63,668 nucleotides of DNA, filler included, from Lenisia limosa (GCA_001655205.1; 8 parts of 8 records of this genome joined end to end with filler, not necessarily neighbours in it); one strand, 5' to 3'. Positions 55,025 to 60,030 are shown, counted from the whole stretch's first letter. The notes: generated from the letters alone by a model not told the origin. Translations and numbers: made by a program.

Positions 55025-55607
55025 CTTGTACAAGACACTTTGAGGGTCTTTGGTGAAGCGGGCTTGTGCTTTTCTGAGATGTTCCTCAGAGAATACGACT
55101 GAAAAATTGCCATTTACTGGTTGTTTCCGTTGATTGGCTTCTGGAGCTCAGCATTGGTTCCATTATGGTGAAAATATTGTCAAATATTGATAAGGAAGAT
55201 TGCGCAAGGGGTTGCCTCGAACTGCTTGAACTCCCAACAGTTTCTTTGACTTGATTTTGATAGGTAGATTTTCAATCTCATTCTTATGGCTTCTCGACTT
55301 CATGACTTATCGTATTAGGAACAAGATGGTACATTGCGAAATACTTAAAAAAAATGCTCATCTCCATCCCTGGAAAAAAAGACACGGTGCCTCTTACTGA
55401 GGTTAGATCTACTTTGAAGGAGTGATATATATACTAGTATTTCATATAATTTGATACATATTATACCTATTTTTATATACATAATTTCTGTTATAATATA
55501 TTCATATATATATACTATATAATATGATATGCTATTTTTTTTTTTCATGTGATATTTTTAATAATTCTACACTATTCTATTATAGTATGTACGTTTTGCC
55601 TCACGGC

Positions 55608-57066
55608 TTCAACAGGGCATCCAGAAATTGTTGCTTCATACTCTTCTGAGCCCCCAGTCACATGTATCCCCCTCTTGCCTTTTGGTCTTGAGCCATTCAT
55701 CCTTGCTGTATCAGTTAAACCTCCTTGTCTTGGACTTACCGATTCGAGAATCAAACACCTTGATTGGTCGACAGCACGCACAAGAAAATCTTACACTGCG
55801 TCATGGAAAAGCCGAGTACCTTGATCTCATGACTGTCAAACGACTGCGACGATTGGAGAGCACCAATGCTCTGTTTGTGCGCTGGTGTAAACAGAACTGC
55901 TTAAAGACAATTTCGTCAGGCCACAAAAGGTCACCCTTCCCCCAGTCATTGATGACACCCCACCCGCAATCTGATGGTACCTTATTTCCATAGGTTGAAA
56001 AGGTCGGTAAGGAGGGGAAAATGAAGATAATCCCCAGACAGTCCAAGAAGGTATGAACGTTCCGATTATTTTGATTTGTTAATCGTTCAGGTTCTCGAAC
56101 TGATGGCAAGACTCACCATCTACGCCAGTAACGACCGAGAGCACCACCACTCCCTTCGCATGGTGGTTGATATCCTGTCGTCAAGGATGCCGGTGGAGCA
56201 GTTGCTGAAGCCTCGCAAGTGTGGTAATGAGGTGTGCGGGTCATGTTGATAAAGAACAAAATTACTTTATTATTGTGAGAAAATCCTTGTGTTTCAATTA
56301 GCCTAGCCTTTCCTAAGCTTCATATGAAATTGATGTAGATCCAACACAATATATTCCTTATAATTTAGCTGGATAATGCTCTCTCCGAATTCCGTGAAAG
56401 CCTCACCTGACTTCGGGAAACTACCCACGACTGATGGTTTGTTACCCACTTCGTCATCAGCACAAAAATTATCATTTTGACAATATAGAAGTTCTGCAAA
56501 CCATGGTACCTGTTCCTCTGCCATTTCCCCGTTTGTCAAGTAGCCGAGCTCTTCGAACTACTCGTTGAGTTTGTCGCCCCGACTCGTGTTGTGGATGGAG
56601 AGAGAGTAAGGAGAGTTTTTGGAGGTAGTTAAGAGTTGAAATCTAATGATCAGGACGAGCCCCAGGAGCTGGAGTCCCCACTTCTCGGCTTTGATAACAT
56701 CTTGCCTAGAATTTTTTAGGCTCGCTAATCTGACCCAAACTACTCTTCAAAAGCGGTTTGCTACCACTGTTTAAACAGCAAACACTAATTTCAGCATCTT
56801 GTATCCACAAGCGCTACCCGGCCAATGAAGGCAAAGTGAGAGGGCACCTTCTCACGGTCGTGTCCAAGCGAGGGAGGGTGATTGCTGCGTGTTCGTTGCC
56901 AACGCTGAGTCTACACTTCTTCTCCTCCACTGGCTCCAGCAACGCATCGGCCCTGGTAGGAGAGGAACAGGCACACAAATCATCTCTTCTGAAATATATT
57001 ATAACATATGCACAAAGTATATGTATATATTCTCATGAATGCTGAATACTGAAGAGTTGAGTGGTG
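55608..57066 (+). pseudogene. Chimeric, truncated KDZ-like pseudogene (PPCLGL domain fragment joined to a duplicated KDZ middle module)
   Basis: 55972-57066 is a near-identical inverted copy of 57672-58777. It carries indels (about 56405, 56795, 56888) and nonsense changes (CAG>TAG and AAA>TAA near 56717-56728), and it lacks the YDNSC exon. Confidence 0.65.
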
Positions 57067-58777
57067 AAACTAATATATTAACACCATGTATATATGTTTA
57101 AAAATTAGTTTCAACATATACAAGTGATGAGTTGCCTGACTATTCTGTCCAAATGATGAAGATATTCATAACAGGGTGTGTCAGAGTATTTGAGAAAACT
57201 AACTGACCAATAAAAAATTTGTATATAAGGTCGTGCGGGCCCAAAGTAGCTCATAAATAAAAATACTCTCACGTATAAAGCATAATGAAGCAGAAAGAAT
57301 ATATTGTATCATGTATTATTCGATTTTATAATAAACAATACGCATTGAATTTCGTTTATTATATACAGCTACACACATGCATATTTAACATAGCTCNNNN
57401 NNNNNNNNNNNNNNNNNNNNNNNNNNNNNNNNNNNNNNNNNNNNNNNNNNNNNNNNNNNNNNNNNNNNNNNNNNNNNNNNNNNNNNNNNNNNNNNNNNNN
57501 NNNNNNNNNNNNNNNNNNNNNNNNNNNNNNNGAGCAAAAGCTCTCCGGCAAGCCAAGGGTCATGAATCGCCAATGTGGTGGCGGCATTACAAGAGTTGTC
57601 GTACTGTATAAAGTTCACTTTGGATCCTGTATGAATGAAAGAAAAACCACCAACGGAAGGGTTAGAATGAACACCACTCAACTCTTCAGTATTCAGCATT
57701 CATGAGAATGTATACATTTCATATACTTTGTGCATATGTTATTATATATTTCAGAAGAGATGATTTGTGTGCCTGTTCCTCTCCTACCAGGGCCGATGCG
57801 TTGCTGGAGCCAGTGGAGGAGAAGAAGTGTGGACTCAGCGTGGGCAACGAACACGGCAGCAATCACCCTCCCTCGCTTGGACACGACCGTGAGGAGGTGC
57901 CCTCTCACTTTGCCTTCATTGGCCGGGTAGCGCTTGTGGATACAAGATGAGTTCTGAAATTAGTGTTTGCTGTTTAAACAGTGGTAGCAAACCGCTTTTG
58001 AAGAGTAGTTTGGGTCAGGTTTGCGAGCCTGAAAAATTCTAGGCAAGATAGTATCAAAGCCGAGAAGTGGGGACTCCAGCTCCTGGGGCTCGTCCTGATC
58101 ATTAGATTTCAACTCTTAACTACCTCTAAAACTCTCCTTACTCTCTCTCCATCCACAACACGAATCGGGGCGACAAACTCAACGAGTAGTTCGAAGAGCT
58201 TGGCTGCTTGACAAACGGGAAAATGGCAGAGGAACAGGTACCATGGTTTGCAGAACTTCTATATTGTCAAAATGCTAATTTTTGTGCTGATGACGAAGTG
58301 GGTAACAAACCATCAGTCGTGGGTAGTTTCCCGAAGTCAGGGTGAGGCTTTCACGGAATTCGGAGAGAGCATTATCCAGCTAAATTATAAGGAATATATT
58401 TTAGTTGGATCTACATCAATTTCATATGAAGCTTAGGAAAGGCTAGGCTAATTGAAACACAAGGATTTTCTCACAATAATAAAGTAATTTTGTTCTTTAT
58501 CAACATGACCCGCACACCTCATTACCACACTTGCGAGGCTTCAGCAACTGCTCCACCGGCATCCTTGACGACAGGATATCAACCACCATGCGAAGGGAGT
58601 GGTGGCGCTCTCGGTCGTTACTGGCGTAGATGGTGAGTCTTGCCATCAGTTCGAGAACCTAAACGATTAACAAATCAAAATAATAGGAACGTTCATACCT
58701 TCTTGGACTGTCTGGGGATTATCTTCATTTTCCCCTCCTTACCGACCTTTCCAACCTATGGAAATAAGGTACCATCA
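55972..58777. repeat. Large inverted duplication: arms 55972-57066 and 57672-58777, plus outer arms 55423-55577 and 59097-59274
   Basis: Base-by-base reverse-complement match of about 1.1-kb arms around a 605-bp spacer. A second AT-rich pair of arms of about 155-180 bp lies outside them. Confidence 0.92.
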
Positions 58778-60000
58778 CAAATAAACTACCTCGACAGCAC
58801 TCTCAAGCTTGTCCATATCAGCGTCACGAAGGAGATCGCGTGCCTCTTGCGGATTTTTGAGCACCCGTTGTGAGAAAGGGATCCTTGACAGTCAAATCAA
58901 TTTTCATTTGTTATATAAACATCATATACATTGCATATTGTACATATCATATGGCCACATACATGTACTATACATTTACATATCCATATACATATCATAT
59001 ACTACTATATTATTTATACACTGACCGGGATAAGCCTTGACCGATATTCCTTGGGAAATCATTTTGCAAATCAGTCAAAAACTTATCCCGGTTACTGAAT
59101 AGTGTAGAATTATTAAAAATATCACATGAAAAAAAAAATATAGCATATCATATAATATATGATATTTTTAATAGTATATACTGTATATATGAATATATCA
59201 TAACAGAAATTATGTATATAAAAATAGGTATAATATGTATCAAATTATATGTAATACTAGTAATATATATATCATGTAATTAAATGATATTATCCATCAA
59301 TATTATTCGTGATGATACAATACAATATGATATATTATATCATATATTTTTATTGTAAATAGGGTTCTCCACAGACATGGCACGAGGTGGCTTGTCATCG
59401 AATGTGGATGGGCTGATGGTGGGCATGTCCTTGATCCCGATGTCAACACAGTCGATCGCCAGGTCTCGACCTCGTCATCATCTGAGGGGATAGTTTGCTT
59501 TATATCCTCAACACACAAATGAAGGAACAGATGGTGGCAATCCTGAAGGGTCAAAGCTATTAATAAAGCTGTCAACCAACACTGAGGTCCTGGGCTGTGG
59601 GCCTTCGGTCTGGGCGCATGTTGTTGAGAGCGGCTGTCAAAGGAAGTAAGCCGTGACAGGCCTCTGCAAAGGGGCGGGTAAAGGCTTTTGACGGCCTAAC
59701 TCTCAAGATACCAAGGCTTTTGCCAGACAAAAAGTTCCACATTCCGCAGGAGGAACACACTTGATTCAACTAAAGCGGTTATTTCAGGAGGAGAAAAAAA
59801 GTAACGAACTCCGAACTGACTTTGGACGTACAATGTTAAACCCAAACACGTCAACATATTCTTCTTGAATGTGGCCATACTACAAAATAACCATCAAAAA
59901 ATGAACAAAATATGACGTACCTCCGCCCCACAATGATAACACTCTTTGGCATGTGGGTGGTCTAAGAATAGTTCTACAGGAATAACACAATATTTCCTAA
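57111..60000 (-). mobile_element. CxC-KDZ (Kyakuja-Dileera-Zisupton) transposase-like gene, intron-rich, 5' truncated by the scaffold end
   Basis: Exons in order: HAKECYHCGAE|YGHIQEEYVDVFGF..|VCSSCGMWNFLSGKSLGIL (CxC-type); DLAIDCVDIGI (candidate D1); FSQRVLKNPQEARDLL; ILSSRMPVEQLLKP; LPRIFQARKP..|NSSCIHKRYP..RGHLLTVVSKRGRVIAAVFVAHAES; KVNFIQYDNSCN (YDxxC, candidate D2, 57589-57603); gap; DTPCYEYLHHLDRI (candidate E). One frameshift is needed at about 59466. Confidence 0.7.
59019..59097. mobile_element. 79-bp Tc1/mariner-like MITE, copy 3 (in an intron of the KDZ-like gene)
   Basis: TA|CACTGACCGGGATAAGCCTTGACCGA...TCAGTCAAAAACTTATCCCGGTTACTG. The right-hand TA is not preserved. Confidence 0.78.
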
Positions 60001-60030
60001 CTAACCAGCATCAGAACATTCCTCCCAGAG

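Follow-up and report, generated by a model that had tools for sequence, protein, structure and literature searches.

The window analysed here is a stretch of 63,668 nucleotides (nt) of Lenisia limosa DNA (GCA_001655205.1), in which eight parts from eight records of the genome were joined end to end with filler. The usable sequence examined was the piece of about 5 kb at 55025-60030, which has an assembly gap of N letters inside it. Right of the gap lies a fragment of a many-exon gene on the minus strand, and left of it a second, partial and inverted copy. We read these as two tail-to-tail copies of a low-copy, lineage-specific gene. The right copy is an internal 13-exon fragment that is frameshifted in exon 4, carries a mini-element, probably in an intron, and ends at the gap; the left copy duplicates exons 7-12 alone and is dead. 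The initial annotation had described the right copy as an intron-rich transposase-like gene of the Kyakuja-Dileera-Zisupton (KDZ) type, with a candidate D-D-E triad. A decayed, very divergent cut-and-paste transposase gene, possibly KDZ-like, appears to be the most likely identity.

All the motifs quoted in that annotation were recovered on the minus strand, where it had placed them, by translation of the sequence (Table 1). Those from ECYHCG to YDNSC were accommodated by a chain of 13 exons with GT-AG introns, running from 59973 to 57532 and encoding a model protein of about 461 residues (the single frameshift written as X). All 12 modelled introns read GT..AG; eight were 34-52 nt long, and four were AT-rich and measured 138-282 nt. 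The GC content was 0.38-0.59 in the exons versus 0.18-0.40 in the introns. These lengths suggest that the host has a class of very short spliceosomal introns (34-52 nt) beside AT-rich ones of 140-280 nt. Exon 1 begins at an acceptor site, and the gene start therefore lies outside the piece. Exon 13 enters the assembly gap, and the assembled coding sequence stops about 20 residues past YDNSC, which holds the candidate for the second Asp of the triad.

Phase-compatible GT-AG exons, as first described, could be chained over the whole fragment, but the chain is not evidence by itself. When dynamic programming was applied to block-shuffled sequence or to the plus strand, it returned spliceable open reading frames (ORFs) that were just as long, and a spliceable chain was dropped as an argument for a gene. 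With introns limited to 30-60 nt, one of three blocks exceeded the shuffles (p 0.014). The modelled exons were three-periodic in composition (chi2 58, p 1e-10); the long plus-strand ORFs of the same region gave p 0.07. Position 1 of the model codons was enriched in G, and the GC content at positions 1, 2 and 3 was 0.57, 0.39 and 0.58. When random phases were assigned to the 14 exon pieces, none of 20,000 trials reached a chi2 of 58 (maximum 52.6), so the relative phases set by the splice sites are meaningful. In a leave-one-out test, the model frame scored best for 12 of the 14 pieces.

Splicing was confirmed by RNA at one place. A poly(A) RNA contig matched 59390-59542, and its 13 loose letters matched 59581-59593 uniquely. 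The contig thus joins 59542 to 59581 and skips 59543-59580, which reads GT...AG on the minus strand; a joint skipping these positions was absent from the contigs of a DNA run that were placed on the piece. This is the sole intron confirmed in this way. Together with the periodicity and the random-phase test, it upholds the description of a heavily intronised gene with two CxxC pairs on the minus strand. The fragment belongs to a real many-exon gene that is spliced and transcribed at a low level. Over exon 3, at least four variant DNA contigs were placed at 59662-59896, and related DNA contigs carried frameshifting indels in this exon. The DNA-run depth fell to 10 over 59550-59651, with neighbouring bins at about 117 and 119. 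This low-depth stretch takes in the 3' end of exon 3 and the intron confirmed by RNA; filtering can produce such holes.

The right copy is frameshifted within exon 4. Between 59542 and 59390 the RNA contig shows no splicing, and frame 2 is the sole open frame there. The LAIDCVDIGI motif is present in frame 1, and thus out of frame with the preceding part of the exon, which RNA supports; frame 1 has a stop at 59510-59508. Each half of the exon showed the coding signal of its own frame. A single missing base at 59461/59462 separates the two frames, and an extra G would join them; DNA-run contigs with an extra G after 59461 made up 52 of 226 of the summed depth. The right copy, its transcript included, has a 1-nt frameshift at this position.

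Model exon 5 overlaps a 67-nt hairpin mini-element. Its depth in the DNA run was 2,288-4,088x versus about 25-165x over the gene body, and its DNA folding z-score was -4.9. Judging from the loose-end consensus of other copies, the repeat of canonical copies may be 21 nt long, and ACTGA is present on both flanks. The mini-element looks like a highly abundant repeat of the genome, similar to miniature inverted-repeat transposable elements (MITEs). It was most likely inserted within an intron. The overlap makes exon 5 doubtful; dropping this exon leaves the reading frame intact.

Table 1. Features of the piece at 55025-60030. Positions are counted from the first letter of the window; motif positions are given in reading direction.
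Feature	Position	Strand	Remarks
Model exon 1	59921-59973	minus	begins at acceptor site; ECYHCG at 59944-59927
Model exon 2	59817-59879	minus	after 41-nt GT-AG intron
Model exon 3	59581-59769	minus	63 residues; VCSSCG at 59760-59743; 3' end set by RNA; coding score weak
Intron, 38 nt	59543-59580	minus	GT..AG; only intron confirmed by RNA
Model exon 4	59377-59542	minus	frame 2 to 59462, frame 1 from 59461; LAIDCVDIGI at 59462-59433
Model exon 5, doubtful	59026-59094	minus	NRDKFLTDLQNDF...; overlaps hairpin mini-element
Model exon 6	58790-58883	minus	found in right copy only
Model exon 7	58699-58755	minus	exon chain
Model exon 8	58518-58658	minus	exon chain, coding score
Model exon 9	58311-58379	minus	exon chain
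Model exon 10	58142-58258	minus	terminal IRVVDGER, other candidate for first acidic residue
Model exon 11	57993-58094	minus	exon chain
Model exon 12	57788-57953	minus	HLLTVV at 57899-57882; AHAES at 57845-57831; predicted strand-strand-strand-helix
Model exon 13	57532-57626	minus	VNFIQYDNSC; YDNSC at 57603-57589; truncated by assembly gap
Hairpin mini-element, 67 nt	59025-59091	none	terminal inverted repeat CCGGGATAAG; depth; DNA fold
Inverted repeat, right arm	57672-58777	minus	exons 7-12 plus part of intron 12
Assembly gap (N)	57397-57531	none	DNA-run contig placement
AT-rich spacer left of gap	57067-57396	none	no coding signal; holds last exon of the initial annotation (57141-57179), with TPCYEYLHHLDRI at 57179-57141, minus strand
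Inverted repeat, left arm	55972-57066	plus	partial inverted copy of exons 7-12
Left-copy-only segment, 394 nt	55578-55971	none	replaces 58778-59096 (319 nt) of right copy
Further homology block	55425-55577	plus	87% to 59097-59270, part of right-copy intron 4

The left copy was recognised through an inverted repeat of about 1.1 kb around the gap, which is absent from the initial annotation. Its arms were 96.9% identical over 1107 columns after reverse complementation, and they face each other over a 605-nt spacer (57067-57671, gap included). In the left arm, exon 11 is interrupted by two stops and exons 9 and 12 are frameshifted; the arm ends within intron 12, with exon 13 missing. Judged from its sequence, it is a dead pseudogene fragment. 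The arms differ at 34 positions, 20 of them exonic, and exons make up 59% of the arm. The exonic share of the differences is thus close to the exon share of the arm, and there is no sign of constraint between the copies.

Beyond the arm, the left copy has a segment of its own, which is GC-richer and has long ORFs in several frames (135, 103, 98 and 72 residues). Neither a Pfam match nor significant similarity to the right copy was found for it. Diverged versions of right-copy exons 5-6 were considered for this segment and dropped: with tblastn, the best E value reached was 0.5 and the matches lacked colinearity.

The DNA-run contigs placed on the right arm showed left-arm letters at 11 of the 12 positions listed over 57672-58750 (including 57831, 57842, 57855, 57950, 58019-58051, 58661 and 58685; at 58523 there is no difference between left and right). 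The right-arm version of the stretch was not seen among these contigs; it may have been lost as the rarer variant, or the source of the DNA run may differ slightly. Besides the left partial copy, several variant contigs of 90-99% identity, with indels, covered the gene in the DNA run. The family is low-copy and decaying. The expectation of multiple copies was borne out by these variants and the second partial copy, although the apparent copy number is low.

The arrangement around the gap depends on the scaffold. The two arms lie on different contigs, and their adjacency and orientation depend on scaffolding alone. The gap is estimated at 135 nt. Among the DNA-run contigs, none spans it, which leaves continuity and frame across it unsupported: the left-flank contig stops at about 57397, and one contig (284 nt) placed on 57532-57701 reaches 114 letters into the gap from the right side. 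At 330 nt past the gap, the minus-strand gene as assembled would meet the left arm in antisense. The spacer is too small to accommodate a transposase C-terminal half, unless the gap far exceeds its estimate or the scaffold join is wrong. In addition, a single DNA contig (depth 38) links 57105 to 58324 and omits 1218 nt, with a shorter side of just 23 letters; this link may reflect a different arrangement of the repeat or have arisen by chance.

The encoded protein was compared with known families at the level of profiles, sequences and folds. Profile searches covered single exons, other ORFs and two 60-residue exon-junction peptides. In Pfam, 20 stop-free stretches and exons gave chance-level matches only (DUF3725, GLAA-B, DH_ALS2), well under the cut-off, and the peptide across the junction of exons 12 and 13 gave none at E values up to 10. 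The peptide across exons 1-3, which contains both CxxC pairs, gave sub-threshold matches to generic zinc-binding families (Zn_ribbon_3, E 0.011; zf-AD; Zn_Ribbon_1) and none to the CxC1-6 profiles. The CxC zinc domain that had been proposed for these cysteines was not found; the sub-threshold matches may hint at a zinc ribbon of a general kind. Among the exons and junction peptides, none matched a DDE family in Pfam, DDE_Tnp_IS1595 and rve included. The Pfam KDZ profile did not match them either at E values up to 10, a weak negative, as the region past the second Asp was barely covered before the sequence ends.

Sequence searches with exon 12 by phmmer against 1.84 billion representative proteins found no relative. 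Two phmmer matches were judged spurious: they were internally repetitive proteins with the score summed over 4-7 short stretches. When the exon 13 ORF was used in a word-indexed protein search, no candidates emerged. With exons 12 and 3, the ESM Atlas returned scores of at most 0.75 to unrelated families, and two scans of JGI metagenome contigs revealed no relative. The PDB sequence search gave nothing significant, and none of ten ORFs of the window was present in an exact look-up in a collection of 15 billion sequences. Rfam had no match in the piece, and the tandem repeats in it were just AT-rich, microsatellite-like tracts in introns.

For exon 12, AlphaFold2 run on the single sequence predicted strands at residues 2-9, 18-25 and 30-36 and a helix at 39-53, with a mean predicted local distance difference test (pLDDT) of 83. 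Exon 13 opens with a hydrophobic stretch, VNFIQY, followed by Asp. An RNase H-like DDE core begins with three strands and a helix, followed by a strand that ends in Asp. The order predicted across exons 12 and 13 would be compatible with such a core but is not specific to it. In the central segment, the order of strands and helix, with the Asp-ended hydrophobic strand after them, is the one seen in DDE enzymes, and to this extent the initial annotation is supported. A Foldseek search of the PDB with the 55-residue exon 12 model returned nothing under E 0.1.

The D-D-E triad did not hold as it had been drawn. The candidate for the second Asp is YDNSC, and the first is ambiguous between LAIDC, which is out of frame, and VVDGER. 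The first predicted strand of the exon 12 unit (SSCIHKRY) has no acidic residue, so that the first catalytic Asp is either missing or to be sought before this unit, in VVDGER (exon 10) or LAIDC (exon 4). About 290 residues separate the LAIDC Asp from the strand-strand-strand-helix unit downstream of it. The last proposed exon, with TPCYEYLHHLDRI and the assigned Glu, lies in sequence of 29% GC and has a coding score of -2.6. Its vicinity has 5-7 stops per frame, and it lies past the unbridged gap. In a KDZ protein, the His motif and the later Glu would fall in the gap or past it.

KDZ transposons are defined by a KDZ transposase domain together with an N-terminal CxCn zinc module (PMC11343200, PMC12730594). 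Terminal inverted repeats have been described in some lineages (Zisupton, Cryptococcus KDZ1-3), and the Kyakuja families are reported to be without them; the target-site duplications are 8 bp long, or 7 bp in Kyakuja (PMC11343200, PMC12730594). The gene described here resembles these elements in its Cys-rich N-terminal module, which precedes a putative core of the DDE type, in a hydrophobic strand that ends in YDxxC, and in having more than one decaying copy in the genome. It differs from them in its at least 12 modelled introns, most of them 34-52 nt long, and in having no TET/JBP neighbour in the piece. Furthermore, neither terminal inverted repeats nor 7-8 bp target-site duplications are visible within the piece, and the Glu region lies outside the assembly. 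The gene leaves the piece at 60030 on one side and enters the gap at 57531 on the other, and the only large inverted repeat found there consists of internal exons, not of element ends.

RNase H-like DDE transposases and integrases, for example of the IS1595/Merlin and rve types, would share with the present gene the order of a zinc ribbon, a strand-strand-strand-helix unit and an Asp-ended strand followed by DNSCN. In contrast to those families, the zinc module lies about 330 residues upstream here, which is far more than in them, the first predicted strand has no acidic residue, and no Pfam DDE profile matched. Domesticated KDZ genes of the HMGXB3 type would have in common with this gene that they are intron-containing, transcribed and transposase-derived. 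Domestication predicts an intact frame and purifying selection, whereas here a frameshift, a truncation and a dead sister copy were observed. The frame is broken at 59461/59462, the left copy is disabled, and 20 of the 34 differences between the arms are exonic. The suggestion that the gene is either recently active or domesticated was therefore abandoned: the copy is frameshifted and cut at both ends, its neighbour is dead, and exons and introns do not differ in divergence. The same frameshift, truncation and dead sister copy argue against both recent activity and domestication.

The protein would start with a four-cysteine zinc-ribbon-like module, and some 330 residues further on would have the strand-strand-strand-helix unit and then the VNFIQYD strand, in the order of an RNase H-like DDE core. 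This combination of module and core-like order makes a decayed and very divergent cut-and-paste transposase gene the most likely reading. An intact ancestor would have bound DNA with its zinc module and cut it with an acidic triad; the present copies cannot do so. That the gene derives from a divergent, unplaced family of DDE-type transposases, the KDZ case aside, is put forward tentatively, with a confidence somewhat short of even. Several observations weigh against a transposase origin. The protein matched no family of transposases in profile, sequence or fold. The strand-strand-strand-helix motif is a common one, and its first strand here lacks the expected acidic residue. The catalytic Glu region is outside the assembled sequence, the ends of an element (terminal inverted repeats, target-site duplications) are not visible in a piece of 5 kb, and the apparent low copy number would fit an ordinary small gene family too.

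Membership of the KDZ group itself, as a true but very divergent representative with its His motif and Glu in or past the gap, is possible but unlikely. Its motif order (a Cys-rich N-terminus, ...DG.., ..SxC.., a pair of strands of Gly and hydrophobic residues, and a hydrophobic strand with YDxxC) resembles the order in KDZ alignments, a lead and not a test. KDZ elements have already been reported beyond fungi and animals, green and brown algae being examples. On the other side stand the exons and junction peptides that matched neither Pfam KDZ nor CxC1-6 at E values up to 10, the failure of phmmer to find a relative among the 1.84 billion representatives, and a C-terminal half that does not fit the spacer unless the gap far exceeds 135 nt. 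The neighbouring TET/JBP genes that often accompany such elements were not encountered, and no other domain was found in the piece. We hold it about equally doubtful that the copies belong to an ordinary host gene family, that is, a zinc-ribbon protein unrelated to transposases whose gene underwent a segmental inverted duplication, with one or both copies decaying. Contig depths of about 25-165 over the gene body, as opposed to thousands for the mini-element, indicate a low copy number, the introns are normal spliceosomal ones, poly(A) RNA is present, and a transposase signature was absent from all searches. However, the transcribed copy is frameshifted, several paralogous contigs carry frameshifting indels, and no constraint was seen between the two copies. 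Moreover, no homologue was found in any proteome searched, which would be unusual for a conserved host gene.

That there is no gene at all, with an exon chain arising from the free choice of GT and AG and a palindrome produced by the assembly, is highly improbable. Such a view could draw on the equally long spliceable chains that the plus strand and shuffled sequence also yield, and on arms that sit on different contigs joined by a scaffold gap only, where the DNA-run contigs carry left-arm letters only. It is already largely refuted by the RNA splice on the minus strand, the coherent codon periodicity over 14 exon pieces and the random-phase test. The difference in GC content between exons and introns speaks against it as well, and arms that differ at 34 positions cannot be one sequence read twice. 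An unrecognised and extremely divergent DDE lineage, KDZ-related or separate, that is intron-filled and still transcribed and has complete, possibly active copies elsewhere, would be the most far-reaching version of the transposase reading; we consider it improbable.

At present, the locus is mainly an annotation case, in which a transcribed, frameshifted gene relic stands beside an inverted dead copy at a scaffold gap. It also calls for caution: in sequence of this kind, chance alone produces phase-compatible chains of GT-AG exons, and periodicity or RNA evidence is needed before they are taken as genes. A KDZ member in a protist would be no categorical novelty, given that KDZ elements are already reported beyond fungi and animals. 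If complete copies turned out to encode a divergent KDZ-like or a new DDE transposase, the known range of the group would be extended, and the gene would provide an example of a transposase gene densely filled with very short introns.

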